A stretch of 63,075 nt of DNA, the filler included, from Olpidium bornovanus S191 (Eukaryota; Fungi; Olpidiomycota): NCBI GenBank assembly GCA_017911155.1. It is 33 parts of 33 records of this genome, joined end to end, with 100 filler letters (N's around TTAATTAATTAA, not from the genome) between each part and the next. Parts side by side here need not be neighbours in the genome. Positions count along the whole stretch, not along the records: positions 55,694 to 56,800 come from JAEFCI010012574.1; 32 more parts are not named here. One strand, written 5' to 3'. The notes beneath the pieces are model-generated. The model had not been told where the DNA came from. It searched no databases and worked only from the letters and a program-made list of their open reading frames with translations. Of this stretch, positions 356 to 57,154 are shown one piece after another. Within the stretch, counting starts at the first letter, position 1. Every line of letters begins with the position of its first letter. A program made the position numbers and the translations under genes.

Positions 356-1526
356 TGGACTCATCGGACGGGCGCATGGTCATCCAGCTGACTATTCCGC
401 TTGTTTTAGGACTGGGGACATCCGTCATTATGATAGCAGCCGCCGCTGCTGTCTGCTGCTTCTACATGGCAAAGAGGCGTTACCAGGTCACATCGGTTAA
501 GCAGCCGCCGTCGATGCCGGCAGACGTACCATACAACGCCGCCGGGGGCCGGGACAGGAAGGCGACCATAGGCGGGGTGATGGAACAGGGAGATGAGTAC
601 AGGGCCGTCCTGTCGTTCGATGGTCGGAAGGAAGACGAGCTGGACTTGCGCCGTGGCGACCTCGTTACTGTGAGCCACACGCATACCGACGGGTGGGTTA
701 CCGGACGTTCCCGCGTTACTGGACGGGAAGGCGTGTTCCCGCTTGCGTGCGTCGAGCCGGTGGACGGTCAGAAGCGAGTCCCATCCAGTCTCCTCAGGCG
801 TATGTCCAAGCCGTTACGCGGCGGGATGATACCAAAGCGCACCACATCCCACATCCGCCGAGAGAGCCGCGACAGATGGGAAGAGGAGGACGAGTACTTT
901 TCAGAGGTGTACCCCATCGACGTGCTCGCCGGGCGAGGGAGGGAGGACTTCGATAACTCGGACAGTGGGCAGGATCTCGATAATCTCGACGAAAGCGGGG
1001 AAACGAGCATCTACAGCTCCGGCATGTCCGAGACCATGCCGCTCGACGGGGAAGGCGCGAGAAACAGGATGGTCGCCGGTCTGCCTGGCGAAATCGAAGC
1101 CAACGGGCGAGCCACCGTTGCCCAGCCGGGCGCACCATCGGAATCTGCCTATTCCGGCTTTGCTCGCGAACGCGCCGCGAACGCCATGCTGCGGTCAACC
1201 AGCATTTTGGACGTTTCGGGAACGGGTGTCGAGCCGTTTTCAACACAGCCAAACAATGCGTCGCCGGGATCTCTAATCGTTGACGGTCCGGCCCATCTGG
1301 AAAGTGTCGTGCTACCAAGCGACCTAGCCCGCGCTCCCCTGGGGCACCCTCCTCCAACGCCGGAGAACCTCCCGGGCGCGTTTGCGTCGCCGGTAGCACG
1401 ACCGGAGGGGCACACTGCCGCGCCATTTGCGGTGTTCCTACCTCGTGATCTGCAGGTGCGGGTAGAATCGTTGGCGTCCGAAGAGGTGGTGTCCCCATCG
1501 GCTGAAGAAGCGGGCCACGACATGCA
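203..1526 (+). CDS. Single-pass membrane protein with cytoplasmic SH3 domain, possibly preceded by a WSC-like Cys motif (partial)
   Basis: Hydrophobic helix LVLGLGTSVIMIAAAAAVCCFYM followed by KRR. SH3: YRAVLSFDGRKEDELDLRRGDLVTVSHTHTDGWVTGRSRVTGREGVFPLACVEP. In-frame upstream DRCNFNCAGPDPQILCGA. Runs into the gap. Confidence 0.8.
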
Positions 1527-1626
1527 NNNNNNNNNNNNNNNNNNNNNNNNNNNNNNNNNNNNNNNNNNNNTTAATTAATTAANNNNNNNNNNNNNNNNNN
1601 NNNNNNNNNNNNNNNNNNNNNNNNNN
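1527..1626. other. Artificial contig-joining linker (44 N + TTAATTAATTAA + 44 N); first of 32 identical linkers
   Basis: Identical 100-bp structure recurs at 3332, 5062, 7497, 8785, 10106, 12457, 14272, 15687, 17501 and onward to 61342. The 12-mer is palindromic and gives stops in all six frames. Confidence 0.98.
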
Positions 1627-1699
1627 AGGCTTGACTTCTTTTTTTCAAAAAAAAACCATAAAAAATAAAAAAAAATAAAAAACCTACGTTCAGTCAACA

Positions 1700-3331
1700 G
1701 AGGTTGACGGCATATCTGAAACGGATTTGATCGCGGCCCAGCCCATGCGGGACTTCGTCGGGCTCGAAGAGGGGGACACGGACATGACGAAGGCCATGAT
1801 GGATTTCAGTTACTTCCTCACCGTCGGAAACATGGACGAGGCCTTCAGAGTAAGCCCGCGCGCGTCTGCTGGGTTTTCAGCGAGCCTTTAGGAGCGAAGT
1901 CCCGGCGCGTGTGGGGCTTGACGACCCCTTTTGTTTTCTCGTTGCGTCCCCCCACCCCAACGCACCCCTTTTCCCACGCTTCCCGCGCGCGCGCGCGGAC
2001 GACATCCGCTGCGGCCCAGGCTGTAAAATTCATCCGGTCAAACACGGTCTGGGAGAACATGGCCCGGTTGTGCGTGAAAACTGGGAGAGTCGACGTCGCG
2101 TCGGTTTGCCTCGGCAATATGGGCAACGCTCAGGCGGTGGCCGCGTTGCGGAGCGCATCGAAGGAGAAGGAGCCGGAGGTCAAATTGGCGGTCGTCGCGA
2201 TACATCTAGGTCAGGGATTTTTTTTCCGGCTGCTCAAATCACGTGCTTGTTTTGTTTTTTGAAGAAGGGGGAAACCGTTGGAATCATGTTTTCTTTCTTT
2301 TTGCTCTTTTTTTTGCACACGTCGGGCAGAAATTCTTCTATCTTATGATGTTTTTTGTTGATCTGCCGCTTCGCCCGCCACATCCCCCACGTCACCAGAG
2401 ATTCGGAGCGTTCCTGGACATTCCACCTGAACGTTTTGGTCCGAGACTAATTTCTTCTCCCCTCCCACCTCCCCCCCCTCCTTCTCCCCCTCCTCCTCCC
2501 CCCGTCTGACGTTTGGGCGGCTCGCGACGGAACGATGAAACAGGGCTGTACGATGACGCCATCCGGCTGTACGAGTCCTGCGGCCGCTGGGATTTGCTGA
2601 ATCATCTTTATCAGGTACTGGGGAAGAGATTTTGCCCAGGAGTGTGGGAGGAGAGGGCCGCGTGACCGGTACTCACGTCCACGAAAATCTTCCCCGTTTC
2701 CTCGCAAACATGAACCTTGCCGTTCCTCTTCCCCCCCCCCCTTCCCCCGCTGTCCTCCCCACTTCCCACCCATTCAGGGGATGAACAGATGGCACAAAGC
2801 CCTGGAGGTTGCCGCGCAGCAGGACAGAATCGCACTGAGAACCACTTATTATAAATTTGCAAGGCATCTCGAGAGCTGCGGTGACCGCGTGGGCGCAGTA
2901 GCAGCGTACGAGAAGTCCGGAACGTACATGTGAGGTGGAAAAAAAAAGAAAAAGAAAGCGTAACGGGTGGACGGGTAACCGCCGATTTTCTCTTCCAATA
3001 ACATCGCAGCGGATGGGGTGATTCGGTCACTCCAACAAAAAATTTTGGGCATTTGTGACGGAACGAAACACAGGGTGGAAGTTCCGCGAATGTTGTTGGA
3101 CGACGAGGGCGAGCTGGAGAAGTACATGCAGACGTCACAGGACAAAGTTCGCAAGCAAACGCGTTTTTTTTTCTTCTTGCGACTTCGGGCAGAAAGGTCC
3201 AAAAAAGACACATGCGCCGCAATTGACAAAAAAAACTTCTGCCCCCTTCAAGGAGATGCGGAAGTGGTGGGCGCAGTTCGCGGAGAGCAAAGGTCAGTAC
3301 GACGTCGCTCTGAAGCACTACGACCTCGCCG
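1700..3331 (+). CDS. IFT140: Intraflagellar transport protein 140 (internal exons, TPR-like region)
   Basis: Spliced GT-AG exons read PMRDFVGLEEGDTDMTKAMMDFSYFLTVGNMDEAFR / AVKFIRSNTVWENMARLCVKTGRVDVASVCLGNMGNAQAVAALR / LYDDAIRLYESCGRWDLLNHLYQ / VEVPRMLLDDEGELEKY / EMRKWWAQFAESKGQYDVALKHYDLA, matching remembered IFT140 sequence. Confidence 0.95.
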
Positions 3332-3823
3332 NNNNNNNNNNNNNNNNNNNNNNNNNNNNNNNNNNNNNNNNNNNNTTAATTAATTAANNNNNNNNNNNNN
3401 NNNNNNNNNNNNNNNNNNNNNNNNNNNNNNNACGGAAGATCTGGAAGGAATCGGCGCACGTGCCGCGAGAGCGGCCCTCCCATTCAGGAGAAAAAGGGGA
3501 GCACCCAGACGAGCGTGCACCGCTGGCTGTCGGACGGAGCGCCCGCTGCATGCACTCGTCGACCCCCGCCGGGTCTCCCCCCACCCCGCCCAACAGATTG
3601 CGGTCTTCCCCTGCAGCGCGCAGTTTTTACGCGGTCCCCGTGGATCTCTCACGGGACGAAAACTCCCCGAATTTCCAGGCAGGAATTCTTCACTCGCCAA
3701 GGGAAAACCTCCATCAACAAATGGAGAAACCCGCGACCCTTGATCTCTTCGCTTGAGCGAGGATGATTGCTGTAAATACATTATAAGGCGTTCTATGGTT
3801 ACGTGATGAAAGATGCACCCCTG

Positions 3824-5061
3824 TTTTAGATGATGCTGCGCGCGTAGCCTTGTCCCCATTGCAGACGCAAACAAGAAGAGGAGTAAAAAAATGAGTGTAA
3901 CGCTTTCCGGTTATCAAGCTCGGCGAGCCCCGAACGGCAAGAACTGTTCGCGGCGCTCTGCGAAAACAACAACCGCGTGTTCCCGCCACCAACAGAAACG
4001 GCCCGCAGGTTGCCGAAGAAAGCCCAACAAACGTCTGGGTGCGCTGCCGCGGACGTTTGCTCGCAAGCAGGCCAGCAGGGGGCAAAAACTGGCAAGCGAA
4101 GCTCTGCGCATCCCCAAAAGAGCAGGAGGAGAGCACAAAAGGGGCGCGAAAACAAAGGAAACAAGCGCGCGTGGGGGCAACCGGGTCGACGACGATGCAA
4201 ATAAATTTCGAACGGGTAGATAGCGCGAAGGAAAAGTAGACCAGGGGCCTACTCCGCTACCGGCTCGGCGGCAGCGGTAGCGCGTCACCGAATTCAGGCG
4301 GTCCTCCGAGAGTCGGCGAGAGCTGCGAAATGAGGTGCGGAAGGAGCTTGTTCCGCATCGAGCGGAGCTGGTCGGACGAGGTTTGGTCAGGGTCGCCTTG
4401 TTTGAGGTGCCCCCGAAGAGAACACAACGGAGGAAAGTGGCGGAGTGTCAGATTGACGGAACAACGGGGCCTCATAAGCGGGTTGGAAACGCGACGGGCG
4501 TTGGATATGTACCTTCGGCGAAAAAACGCCCATATCTCCGATCGTCTACCACCGATCCCGGCGAGCCTTTCCACGGCGGGGCGGCAGGGGCGACCACGTA
4601 AGAATGCTGCAAGCGGATACGTCAATCAGCTCGGGCAACCCGGCAGAGTCCACGCTTCCGGGCGCTAGCCACGCTGGAAACTATTTGAATAGTCACCTCA
4701 AAATACCACTGCGCTTGAGCGTCGTCCACCAGCGGCACATCCTCTTCCGATCCCGGCACTACCATCACAAACCGAACTTTCCGGGCAATGCTTGCTGCAA
4801 AAGAAGGCGTCGCGGACGACCGGGCATCTCGCGGTTGTTTTTACCGTCCCAAGACAGTTGGCGTGCCCGGCCTTTTCCCCTGGCAAAAAGCCCGCGGCCA
4901 CGTACGTCGCCGGCTGATCACTTCCGTCACGGCCTCGACGAGAGCTCCAGCGCATAAGAAGCATACCCGCTCCGCGCTTGAGTTTCTGATTTGAAGGTAA
5001 AAGTACCGACGCCCCGCCCGGATAATAACTGTTACGCCGATTACCTCCAGGTCAAAACATG
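3824..5061 (-). CDS. Multi-exon hypothetical protein, C-terminal part
   Basis: A phase-consistent chain of GT-AG exons gives HVLTWRNSSAERVCFLCAGALVEAVTEVISRRPSIARKVRFVMVVPGSEEDVPLVDDAQAQWYFEHSYVVAPAAPPW...RMRNKLLPHLISQ-like segment...RYARSII*. Family not recognised with confidence. Confidence 0.5.
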
Positions 5062-5558
5062 NNNNNNNNNNNNNNNNNNNNNNNNNNNNNNNNNNNNNNN
5101 NNNNNTTAATTAATTAANNNNNNNNNNNNNNNNNNNNNNNNNNNNNNNNNNNNNNNNNNNNAGCGGGGGGTGGGGTGCGTCGGAGATGCTTTTCCTCTGC
5201 GGGTTTTCTGGAAAGCACGAGGCAAACGAACGCCACGCCGGCTGCTCCGTCGGTAAGACGAAAAGATCGTCTCTTGCCATGGGCGGGGTGGGGTGGGGTG
5301 GGTGGGTGAGGGGGGGAGGGGAGGGGAAGGGGAAGCAGCGCGCGGTCCCGCCCATTCGGGCTCTCTTTGCGGTGTCACGTGGAACGCAAGGACAATGACG
5401 TGACTGCGCAAGGCCTACGGCGTAAACGAAAACCACCACCAAAACAACACCAGGACCTCCCCCCCTCTTCCTTCCCGGTCGCCCCCAGCCGCTCCGCCCA
5501 CTTTCCTTCTCCCCTCCTTTCTGCTCCGCCCCCCGCTCCGCCCAGAGAGAAAGCAAAA

Positions 5559-7496
5559 ATGGCCGAGAAGAAGCACCTGTCTATCGTCATCTGCGGCCAT
5601 GTCGACTCCGGGAAGTCCACCACCACCGGCCGCCTCCTGTTCGAGCTCGGCGGTACGCGGCTACCTTCTCGCCTCCCACCGTTTTCCCTTTTTCCCTCCA
5701 GCCTTGGCGCTCGCGTTCTTTCTTTCTTTTTTTCTCTTTTTTGTTTTCGTTTTTCGTTTCCGGCGCTTCCCGCCTCGTGCGTCGCCTATTTCCGCTTCCC
5801 CCGCCCGCTGACCGGAAACCCCCCCCCCCCCAACCGCTCCCCTTTCTTCCGCGTCACCGCCGCTCCCCGGCGCGTTTCGCAGGTATTCCCGAGCGCGAAA
5901 TGGAGAAGCTGCGGCAGGAGGCCGACGCCCTCGGCAAGTCGTCTTTCGCCTTCGCCTTCTACATGGACCGGCAGAAGGAGGAGCGCGCCCGCGGCGTGAC
6001 CATCTCCTGCACGACCAAGGAGTTCTTCGTGAGTTAGGAGCGGGACGCGCCGCCCGCGCGGGAAAATTTAAACATTGTATTTTTTTGCACGTACCCTATT
6101 CTTGAATCCGAAGCTGACCCTACTTTCTCCCCCACCGCTACCGCTGCTTTCCCCCACCACTCCCTTTTTTCCCGTGGAAATTTCAAAGACGGAACGGTGG
6201 CATTACACCATCATCGACGCCCCGGGTCACCGTGACTTCATCAAGAACATGATTTCCGGCGCCGCGCAGGCTGATGTTGGTCTTCTCATGGTTCCCGCCG
6301 GTATGTCGTTATCGGGGTGGGGATGGGGGATTTTTCCTTCTCTTTACTTTGCAGTTTGAAGCTCGGTCAGCCGTTAATTTTTCTTTTTGCGCTCTCAGAC
6401 GGTAATTTTACCACCGCCATCCAGAAGGGCGACCACAAGGCTGGAGAGATCCAGGGCCAGACCCGGCAGCATGCCCGCCTGCTCAACCTCCTCGGCGTGA
6501 AGCAGCTCGTCGTGGGCGTCAACAAGATGGACACGGATCCCGCCGGGCCCTACAAAAAGGAACGCTTCGACGAGATTTCCGCGGAAATGCGCGACATGCT
6601 CGTCAAGACCGGCTGGAAAAAGGAGTTCGTTGAGAAGTCTGTGCCCGTCATTCCCCTCTCCGGCTGGCAGGGCGACAATCTCATCAAGAAATCTGAAAAG
6701 ATGACCTGGTGGAACGGCCAGGAGGTTCTCAAGCCTTCAGACAACAAGTCCATCAAAGTTGTCACACTTCTCGACGTCCTCAACGAATTCGCGGAGCTGC
6801 CTCCGCGCAAGTCCGATGCCGCCATGCGCGTACCCATCTCGGGCATTTACAAGATCAAGGGCGTTGGCGATGTGCTTACCGGCCGTGTTGAGCAGGGCGA
6901 GGTCACCCCGAACAAGGATGTCATTTTCCTTCCCACCCACACGTGAGTGGAAGTTCCCAGGTTTTGGGGGGGGTGCGGTCCAGTTCATCCCGACCTGTCT
7001 GACGGTGCCGCTGTTTTCTCGCGCTCGCAGTTCCGCCACTCCGTGCGCCGGCAAAATCTTCACCGTGGAGATGCACCATAAGAAAATCGAAAAGGGTATA
7101 ACGGGCGACAACATCGGCATGAACATCAAGGGCCTCGATAAGCAGAACATGCCTCGTGCCGGCGACGTGATGATATACAAGGATGACACCACCCTGAAGG
7201 CTGTCAAGAGCTTCACTGCCCAAATCCAGACCCTGGACATCCCCGGGGAAGTCAAGGCCGGCTACTCCCCCATCGGCTTCGTACGGTGCGGTCGCTCGGC
7301 GTGCCGGATGAAGGAGATCAAGTGGAAGATTGGCAAGGAGACGGGCCGAAAGAAGCTGGAGTCTCCGCACTCGCTCAAGGCCAACGAGGCCGCCGAAGTC
7401 GTTTTCGAGCCGCAGCAGCCTCTCGTCGTCGACTCGTTCCAAAACTGCGAAGGCCTTTCCCGTATCGCCTTCCTTGACGGCAACTCGGCCGTCATG
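5559..7496 (+). CDS. EFL: Elongation factor-like GTPase (EFL); exons 5559-5652, 5883-6028, 6189-6300, 6399-6942, 7031-7496; 3' end in gap
   Basis: [83 protein letters not shown]-type segments [27 protein letters not shown] and [15 protein letters not shown]. All introns are GT-AG and keep frame. Confidence 0.96.
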
Positions 7497-55593: not shown

Positions 55594-55739
55594 NNNNNNN
55601 NNNNNNNNNNNNNNNNNNNNNNNNNNNNNNNNNNNNNTTAATTAATTAANNNNNNNNNNNNNNNNNNNNNNNNNNNNNNNNNNNNNNNNNNNNAAGCGAA
55701 GGCGTCGGCCGCCGCTACGGGTCGAGCGGCGTCGGCTGC

Positions 55740-56620
55740 TCTCTCTTTTCCTCCTCCCGTCCTTTCTCGCGCAGCGTCGGCTGCGGAGTTCGAGGCCGCG
55801 TCGCAGCGCCATCGACGCCGAACCCGAGGGCGACGCGCACAGCCCGCCTGTCGACCGGGTCGCCCAGAGCTCCCTGCGGGCCCAAAGCCGGCTCTGCCCT
55901 CCCTGCCGCTCGGACCCGATCCGATTGCGGCCACGTCGGCTTCGTCGCCGACACTGTGCGGCTCCTCATTTGCGAAGAAGAAGAGAAGGTTTTCCTCCAG
56001 CTTGAAGTATACGCCGCGAGCTGGCAAGACGAATTTGTCCCCAGAAATGCCCGGTCCCTCCATGCAGAAAGCCGGGCACAGGTGATTTGCGTCGCCGTCA
56101 ACATGCATGCGGGGCTCGAGAATGGCAAAAAGCATGGCTTTGTCAGCCCCATGATCAAAGCATCGATAAACGCACAAGAAGACGCGCAACCAAAATCTAT
56201 CCCACCTGATAGTTGTGCGCCGTCCACATCGGCGGTGGTGCTGCAGGAAACGCCTTGTGGAAAGCCGAGAGCTCATCACTCAGGCACGAATCGTGAGCTT
56301 CAACGTAAGACAAAAACTCGCAAACGAGGCCATGTTGCGCAGTGCAGTTGGCGCGTGTATTAGTCCTTCCGGCGCAGCTCGAAGAGCTGGCTTCGCGAGG
56401 TAGTGAAGCTCCCGCACACTCCGCGGACTGGCCACGCCAAAGCCAGCCATCTTCCCACCAGCGCGATGTTGCCGACACGCCGAACGGCTCACTCCAAGCT
56501 GAGTTTGAAGCAAAACTTGGCACTTACGGAGCCAACAGTTAAAAGTTGCCGTTGGTGCGAAGTTCCGCTGGAAGCCCCCAACGACGGCCATGGTGTCGGC
56601 ATCAAAGATCCATCATTCTT
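55740..56620 (-). CDS. TET/JBP-like 2OG-Fe(II) dioxygenase (possibly frameshifted or pseudogenised)
   Basis: With a proposed intron at 56115-56205 (CTGAC branch site): MWTAHNYQ|PRMHVDGDANHLCPAFCMEGPGISGDKFVLPARGVYFKLEENLLFFFANEEPHSV. HxD to distal His spacing is 49 aa. Upstream GGKMAGFGV and downstream RVALGF lie in adjacent frames. Confidence 0.55.
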
Positions 56621-57154
56621 GCATATTGCCTCAGGCACGATAGAGAGATGCATTCCAATGTCGCAGGCACTTTCTCGGATGGCAGGCTGGACATGAATTT
56701 CCCCAGGCACTTGGCATGCAGCTCCGGTCGATGAGGAAGGATGAGGCAGACGGGAGCTCCTTGGCAGCACGCCAAGGCTCGTGGGTGCCCAGGCTTAGCA
56801 NNNNNNNNNNNNNNNNNNNNNNNNNNNNNNNNNNNNNNNNNNNNTTAATTAATTAANNNNNNNNNNNNNNNNNNNNNNNNNNNNNNNNNNNNNNNNNNNN
56901 CCACGAAAGCACAAAAGCGCATCAAGGAGCTGCTCGTTATCTGCATTTCGTTTAAACGCAACTTCTGTCAGGCTCAATTCTGGCTTCCCAGCTCTAGATA
57001 CGTTTTATTGGTCGAACATGGGGGAAAGCGAGCTAAAGCGGTGAAGCTGGCTTGAACAACGAAAAAACCTAATCAATTGAGAGAGCATGTCCACCTTTTT
57101 ACATTGACGTTTCTACTGGTGCCCATTTTCTGCAGCGGTTTCCGCGTTAGCAGT

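Follow-up and report, generated by a model that had tools for sequence, protein, structure and literature searches.

The gene copy and its exons

The window, that is, the whole 63,075-nt stretch of DNA analysed here, comes from the fungus Olpidium bornovanus S191 (GenBank assembly GCA_017911155.1). One piece of it, the 1.1-kb contig segment 55694-56800 (JAEFCI010012574.1, 60% GC; all positions count along the whole stretch), carries a copy of a two-exon gene whose family, judged by sequence, is small, previously unnamed and distantly similar to the TET/JBP DNA-base-modifying dioxygenases. The coherent coding signal of this piece is confined to the minus strand, and all motifs lie there. An exact look-up of the 103-residue ATG open reading frame (ORF) of the copy in sequence records returned no match. 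The copy was mapped with an intact relative, P0023 (locus L010), as a guide: by tblastn and DNA alignment, the two exons are read colinearly across three frames (Table 1). Homology reaches 56799, and the gene is truncated by the 5' edge of the piece at approximately residue 66 of P0023.

Exon 1 is preserved in three segments. Segment b aligns with residues 1-85 of the L002 exon 1 (E = 7e-43) and with residues 102-216 of P0023 (E = 1e-54); it includes the ATG (56591-56589) at which P0005, the annotated model of a paralog, starts, and the conserved ..KM.G.G.. motif, here GGKMAGFG (56459-56436, frame 2). Segment c closes with ...PPPMWTAHNYQ, in frame 1, finishing at 56206, and is followed by the short intron; an intron after NY[QM] lies at the same position in L001, L002, L005, L007, L008, L009 and L010. 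The exon 2 core begins PRMHVDGD...GDKFVLPARGVYFKLEENLLFFFANEEPHSV, in frame 2 from 56114, and shares 72-91% identity with the products of exon 2 in L010 and L001. It keeps the codons of an Fe-binding triad, namely the His (56105-56103) and Asp (56099-56097) of HxD and a distal His (55958-55956), with 49 residues from His to His. The paralogous exon alignments are far beyond chance, for exon 1 as given above and for exon 2 at E = 1e-23 to 1e-25.

Table 1. Features of the gene copy at 55694-56800, with positions along the whole stretch
Feature	Position	Strand	Description
Exon 1 segment a	56626..56799	-	frame 1, AKPGHPRALACCQGAPVCLILPHRPELHAKCLGKFMSSLPS...SLSCLRQ; tblastn to P0023 residues 66-121, 60% identity, E = 1e-16
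Exon 1 segment b	56361..56624	-	frame 2, MQE*WIFDADTMAVVGGFQRNF...GGKMAGFGVASPRSVRELHYLAKPALRAAPEGL
Exon 1 segment c	56206..56355	-	frame 1, RANCTAQHGLVCEFLSYVEAHDSCLSDELSAFHKAFPAAPPPMWTAHNYQ; 81% identical to P0023 residues 217-268
Phase-0 intron, 91 nt	56115..56205	-	GTGGGA...CTCGAG, GT..AG; position common to seven relatives
Exon 2 core, 53 residues	55956..56114	-	frame 2, PRMHVDGDANHLC...GDKFVLPARGVYFKLEENLLFFFANEEPH; full string PRMHVDGDANHLCPAFCMEGPGISGDKFVLPARGVYFKLEENLLFFFANEEPH
Lesion 1, ~17-nt deficit	56622..56628 (at 56625)	-	21 nt in L010, 4 nt in the window copy; frame 1 to frame 2
Lesion 2, in-frame TGA	56613..56615	-	conserved Cys in relatives (TGC in L010; ...QECW / HECW in P0023, P0025)
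Lesion 3, 1-nt deletion, ~56358	56357..56360	-	relative to L001, L002, L010; frame 2 to frame 1
GC-rich 3' sequence, unrelated to the family	55694..55955	.	occupies the place of the family tail GT.V.D....GR.TMA.S.P..LW

Lesions and the 3' break

Reading across these segments meets two frame changes and a stop codon. The third lesion was placed by gapped blastn alignments together with adjoining tblastn high-scoring segment pairs in different frames: L001, L002 and L010 stay in one frame through ...PEGL(T/M)(T/R)RANC(T/S)AQHGL..., and frame 1 of the window copy from 56355 downward is backed by codon-position statistics. At two conserved positions the copy also carries window-specific replacements: in HLCLA a Leu has become Pro, and the second Gly of the GG pair has become Asp.

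The 3' end of the gene is lost altogether. The similarity shared with L001, L002, L003 and L010 extends to the His codon ending at 55956 and not a base further, and GC content jumps there, from 56% upstream to 72% in the 262 nt past the break. This 262-nt stretch (55694-55955) matches none of the loci compared (the family loci, L001 onward). A hidden Markov model (HMM) of the family tail that follows the distal His, run over all six frames of 55694-55990, found no match beyond FANEEPH (real frames at most -1.6 bits, shuffles up to 10.8 bits), and in these six frames the conserved Arg-bearing tail strand (...GR.TMA.S.P..LW) is missing from the window copy. In TET/JBP enzymes the strand that follows the distal His bears a C-terminal Arg, to which 2-oxoglutarate (2OG) binds by its C5 carboxylate (Arg1896 in HsTET2, Arg289 in NgTET1). 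A look-alike of this strand in the frame-2 read-through, DVAAIGSGPSGR, was compared with RWAIGSSVPSR of L008 and rejected, being not above chance by the tail HMM. Minus frame 2 runs on through 55694-55955 without a stop as far as the edge of the contig (SVGDEADVAAIGSGPSGREGRAGFGPAGSS...); an insertion, a rearrangement and an assembly chimera are candidates for its origin.

Because reading-frame continuity is lost at two or three places and the C-terminal Arg strand is gone, the window copy should not give an active enzyme, despite its kept HxD...H triad. It is probably a pseudogene relic: a decayed copy of a two-exon gene that belongs to a small multicopy family, present in the O. bornovanus metagenome-assembled genome (MAG) and in a few contigs of uncultured eukaryotes.

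A preliminary description of this locus had recognized much of the gene. The strings that it quoted, ...MWTAHNYQ and PRMHVDGD..., do occur, on the minus strand; the upstream GGKMAGFG and the 91-nt GT..AG intron are present as described; and the codon positions confirm the 49 residues that it counted between the two His residues. Its 3' part and its single frameshift fared worse. The frameshift had been sought near a T-run at about 56315; the alignments place a 1-nt gap at about 56357-56360 instead, with the relatives in frame from about 56355. A 61-nt intron had been proposed after DEAD to join a downstream RVALGF strand, yet nine different GT..AG combinations reach RVALGF and none is backed by relatives or by the tail HMM. 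The string RVALGF does occur, in frame 0 near 55840, and both it and DEAD fall within the GC-rich stretch 55694-55955, but its role as a strand of this gene finds no support in the tail HMM.

Relatives and family architecture

A word-indexed search with the core exon returned a single protein match, BJ554DRAFT_499 of O. bornovanus (P0001), 87% identical to it. The contig that encodes this protein (L001) is 84% identical at the DNA level to 56408-55957 of the window, including the intron; both flanks are unrelated. An exhaustive HMMER search, in which a two-sequence core-exon profile was run against 1.84 billion representative proteins, gave 14 matches, 13 of which are true relatives; the remaining one, P0013, a 1084-residue leucine-rich-repeat/DUF285 protein, is a false positive. 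Three of the 13 are proteins of the O. bornovanus MAG (P0001 from L001, P0002 from L003 and P0005 from L002) and are the closest database relatives of the window copy; the other ten, all of them unnamed ORFs, come from metagenomes and SRA assemblies. A search with an N-terminal profile added P0023 and P0025. P0023 contains a complete 270-residue first exon in one ORF, followed at L010 by a GT..AG intron and an open second exon. When the exon 1 profile, or an exon 2 profile with a 364-residue protein at its head (chosen so that full-length TETs could enter), was used in word-indexed searches, family members alone came back and no Pfam-labelled protein.

In intact relatives (L010/P0023), the gene has two exons; the first, of about 270 residues, ends with NY[QM] and is separated from the second by a short phase-0 intron. 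The first-exon consensus (alignments A2 and A5) runs ...CW[IL][FL]D.[DE][ST]M.V.GGF.R.FA...RW...(G/S).M.G.G....L..Y[LV].KP..R.EP.G and continues, after EP.G, as ...RAN....HGL..EFL....A.D..L.DE......P..P.MW....NY[QM]. The second exon (alignment A3), with the consensus P[RK].H.D...[ND]HL.....(22 aa)GGEF[VI][LF]P..G..F.L.DN.L[FW][FW]F.N.E.HGT......(8-10 aa)GR.TMA.S.P..LW, opens at the putative Fe(II)-binding HxD, passes through GGEF[VI]LP and the distal His of HGT, and closes in a mostly conserved Arg strand (the tail position is Arg in 10 of 14 family members). The HxD...H triad is kept in most relatives in A3; it is degenerate in L003 (HxS), P0011 (distal His to Arg) and P0012 (distal His to Pro).

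Probable affinity to TET/JBP dioxygenases

What kind of protein would such a gene encode? The exon 2 sequences of 16 family members were scanned against 24,736 Pfam families. Nine of the 16 match the fungal Tet-like family PF20515 (2OG-FeII_Oxy_6), in each case as the top match (best E = 6e-5, 23.6 bits, gathering score 27), and four match Tet_JBP, PF12851 (best E = 9e-4, 18.9 bits, cut-off 34.9). These matches keep a constant C-terminal register, in the GG...H region (profile positions 168-208/211 and 104-161/164, respectively), and leave the N-terminal parts of both profiles unmatched. PF20515 and PF12851 are the only families that recur (13 member-hits); three others appear once each, at E above 0.1, and AlkB, PF03171 and PF13640-type families were found for none of the 16 members.

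A second line of evidence comes from solved structures. The family profile of exon 2, run against all PDB sequences, had one meaningful match and no other oxygenase: 5-methylcytosine-modifying enzyme 1 (CMD1) of Chlamydomonas reinhardtii (7cy4, E = 0.0021, 21.3 bits), a TET/JBP homologue with solved structures 7CY4-7CY8. The alignment passes through GGEFVLP and vHGT. CMD1 holds its metal with His345, Asp347 and His397 (PMC7854593), and the spacing is coherent: the 49 residues from His to His in the family, with a one-residue insertion and a two-residue offset, make up the 52 of CMD1. The two proteins also differ. CMD1 is larger, with an elaborate double-stranded beta-helix (DSBH; PMC7854593), and it uses vitamin C rather than 2OG because Trp358 blocks the Arg site; no similarity was detected between CMD1 and the N-terminal half of the family in the comparison of profile and PDB.

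Near column 25 of A3, at residue 16 of exon 2, a Trp (..L.[LV][AV]W..) is found in most environmental members within one residue of the position aligned with CMD1 Trp358, the residue that in CMD1 obstructs the site for the C5 carboxylate of 2OG; in the Olpidium clade this position is Phe, Tyr, Val or Cys. This Trp is a possible hint about co-substrate use, in an alignment that is uncertain by 1-2 residues.

The exons were also modelled one by one, as half-domains, and the models are of low confidence (predicted local distance difference test scores of 55 for exon 2, with seven strands and one helix, and 42 for exon 1). Fold searches with the low-confidence exon 2 model put generic cupin/jelly-roll matches first; CMD1 had the highest query template-modelling scores (0.48-0.49, at 24-32% identity). 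In a weak superposition, residue 1 of the model falls on CMD1 342, which sets His4 and Asp6 on His345 and Asp347. In a protein atlas, the lead for the window exon was to Basidiomycota clusters that partly carry Tet_JBP, with a PF13640 cluster at rank 10; a look-up of P0023 in the same atlas returned noise (a NiFe hydrogenase at 0.79).

Taken at the level of the family, a TET/JBP affinity is supported, at moderate strength, by these profile matches, and membership of the TET/JBP clade is likely. The family would most likely be a divergent branch of this clade of Fe(II)-dependent nucleic-acid-base dioxygenases, with CMD1 as its closest solved relative by sequence; in functional members, Fe(II) would be held by HxD...H, and a DNA base would be flipped out and then oxidised or otherwise modified.

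An alternative would place the family among DSBH/cupin proteins outside TET/JBP, for example 2OG oxygenases acting on proteins or small molecules, with the Tet-like matches reflecting a generic HxD...H core. Sub-threshold Pfam matches limited to about 40 C-terminal profile positions, a CMD1 match of only 21 bits, the generic cupins that come first in fold searches and the 270 N-terminal residues that match nothing are all in keeping with it. We consider it unlikely nonetheless: among so many Pfam families the two Tet-like ones alone recur, and in constant register; AlkB, PF03171 and PF13640-type families are matched by no member; CMD1 is the sole oxygenase found by the PDB profile search, with coherent ligand spacing; and the atlas lead points to Basidiomycota clusters that partly carry Tet_JBP.

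The other Olpidium copies and the signature of selection

All four Olpidium copies (the window copy, L001, L002 and L003) are degenerate relative to the long form. L001 is truncated at its 5' side, at residue 200. L002 is intact from an internal Met, with a stop and a frameshift upstream, and has Cys in place of the tail Arg. L003 covers the whole gene, yet contains in-frame stops, several frame changes and HxS for HxD.

Two public gene models at these loci call for comment. At L002:121-1344 (JAEFCI010009937.1), the MAKER model P0005 (KAG5457519.1) runs through the donor after ...MHNYQ and splices into ...FILLGHGAFF; this mis-splice omits PRVHIDHDANHLCLAVCMERSGIVGSE, the Fe-binding HxD segment, and a GT..AG intron at about 529-608 of L002, homologous to the window intron, restores the conserved exon 2. 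At L003:1495-2665 (JAEFCI010001930.1), the 'partial' model P0002 (KAG5462590.1) attaches exon 2 straight to the extreme N-terminal part of the long form (..ALEVLLADREGLQAW..). Between the joined parts lies a frameshifted, stop-containing copy with HxS, and a 614-residue model overlaps on the opposite strand.

Between the exons of the window copy and L001, 27 of 37 substitutions fall at codon position 3, and the ratio of nonsynonymous to synonymous substitution rates (dN/dS) is 0.087. Taken separately, segment c has 2, 4 and 11 substitutions at codon positions 1, 2 and 3 (dN/dS 0.12), and the exon 2 core has a dN/dS of 0.064. With changes polarised by L010 and L002 as outgroups, the window lineage has 9 synonymous and 5 nonsynonymous changes, and the L001 lineage 8 and 4. 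These are thus genuine coding frames, and purifying selection acted on both lineages for most of their divergence. How could dead copies come to differ mainly at synonymous sites? They may have been shed from a selected 'master' lineage, as would be expected of genes carried by mobile elements.

The same numbers could be turned around. If the locus were functional, and its lesions and 3' junction products of a collapsed or chimeric assembly of a multicopy family, the true gene would be an active TET/JBP-like enzyme; the low dN/dS of 0.087 without excess nonsynonymous change on the window lineage, the intact HxD...H triad and a GC jump exactly at the homology break, as in a chimeric join, fit this account, as does the origin of the contigs, 1-4 kb long and assembled with MEGAHIT from non-axenic material (PMC7865070). 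On the other hand, an Illumina/MEGAHIT assembly such as this one is unlikely to contain indel errors of one base, and Illumina assemblies seldom create single-base indels, nonsense substitutions or a deficit of 17 nt. Here three independent lesions lie within 270 nt, the other three Olpidium copies are broken independently and in different ways, and the window-specific Leu to Pro and Gly to Asp replacements hit conserved positions. A functional locus disguised by its assembly is thus very doubtful.

Mobile-element context

Genes of mobile elements adjoin several environmental relatives. L005 lies next to a complete Ty3/gypsy pol with a chromodomain (755-3487); L007 next to a hAT transposase (Dimer_Tnp_hAT and an RNase-like ZBED domain, 4108-5898); and L009 next to a DDE_Tnp_4 transposase of the Harbinger/PIF type and a DUF6818 protein (624-2030 and 4178-5308). 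L004 adjoins a fragment of a gypsy-type integrase-like ORF (..GHHGHRKTYHRLATNYVWP.., at about 1767-2354). Family genes may be carried by, or associated with, mobile elements.

The L004 copy (L004:1365-1923, Logan SRR31067991) has an intronless NYQ|P junction, with MFLTCNYQPKTHQD contiguous, and a frameshift separates ...SDEFTAL* from the ORF that follows. A processed (retrocopied) pseudogene and a contig derived from RNA are the two candidate readings.

Transposon-borne TET/JBP genes of the PU, AG and PE types are known from Pucciniomycetes, Agaricomycetes and Pezizomycetes (Kojima 2025, PMC12730594), and the nearest solved structures of the PU and PE types are CMD1, CcTET (of Coprinopsis), NgTET and TET2 (PMC12730594). 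Likened to these by description, the family shares their multicopy state with many decayed copies, and the hAT and Harbinger-type neighbours of the environmental relatives resemble the carriers of rust PU-type TET genes (PMC12730594). Unlike the family, the PU, AG and PE genes have not been described from zoosporic fungi; and no transposase of the KDZ (Kyakuja/Dileera/Zisupton) type, terminal inverted repeat or target site duplication was seen here. A KDZ transposase was found neither on the 1.1-kb piece, nor on L001-L003, nor beside the environmental relatives. The preliminary description had invoked a KDZ-transposon link, which gives way to the hAT, Harbinger-type DDE and Ty3/gypsy genes next to environmental relatives, the piece itself carrying no transposase. 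Its TET/JBP-like assignment is supported for the family, at moderate strength, through PF20515, PF12851 and CMD1. Its suggestion that the locus could encode an enzyme after repair of one frameshift is not supported, as the copy carries three or more lesions that break the ORF and has lost the Arg strand conserved at the C-terminus of the family.

Provenance and counter-evidence

The O. bornovanus genome was assembled with MEGAHIT from Illumina reads of non-axenic zoospores, and binning relied on composition and similarity (PMC7865070). If the contig came from another eukaryote in the sample, such as a rust or some other fungus whose TET genes are carried by transposons, the zoosporic context would be wrong. 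A MAG binned by composition leaves room for such a contig, relatives do turn up in unrelated metagenomes and SRA runs, and two environmental relatives sit beside hAT/Harbinger-type transposases, like rust PU-type TET genes (PMC12730594). Against this, four contigs of the family came through the binning and the fungal-hit filters of the genome's authors; the database relatives nearest to the window copy, three in number, are all in the O. bornovanus MAG; and GC content and short introns are uniform across the Olpidium copies. A foreign origin seems quite improbable.

Several further points weigh against reading the window copy as the relic of an Olpidium gene of TET/JBP descent. (i) If ATG 56591 is taken as the start, as in P0005, two of the lesions lie 5' of the ORF, which still leaves the 1-nt deletion and the loss of the tail. 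(ii) The 3' junction could be an assembly chimera at a repeat. (iii) The contigs could come from another organism, the attribution to Olpidium resting on binning. (iv) None of the 16 members scanned reaches a Pfam gathering score; the window segments, each taken alone, have no Pfam match; phmmer with the core exon against PDB is blank; and the exon 1 profile has no match in PDB. The 270-residue N-terminal exon likewise matches nothing outside its own family in family or PDB searches. (v) No transposon ends or transposase are present on any Olpidium contig, these contigs being 1.1-4.4 kb long and too short to exclude elements nearby.

Implications

Fungal TET/JBP enzymes have been described from Basidiomycota (CcTET, and those of rust and mushroom transposons) and from Pezizomycetes (PMC12730594, PMC13297926); a 2026 review gives the fungal TET repertoire as CcTet and transposon genes and names none in early-diverging lineages (PMC13297926). 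The Olpidium family would extend a known kind of enzyme to a further taxon; it would not be a new kind of system. A bolder proposal is that Olpidium and uncultured relatives share an intron-bearing, unannotated CMD1-like branch of TET/JBP, whose L010-type members are active and linked to mobile elements, and perhaps modify DNA bases in a non-canonical way or depend on a co-substrate different from 2OG; we put this forward tentatively, as a possibility with less in its favour than against it.

The window copy, being broken, has little value as an enzyme gene; what it offers is a lead to the family and to the intact L010/P0023, with a corrected gene structure and a list of lesions. Olpidium is the zoosporic lineage closest to terrestrial fungi; if the assignment is true, a TET/JBP-related family there would widen the known distribution of these enzymes, and the family would offer a divergent, compact member of about 370 residues in which co-substrate and base specificity may be compared with those of CMD1 and CcTET.

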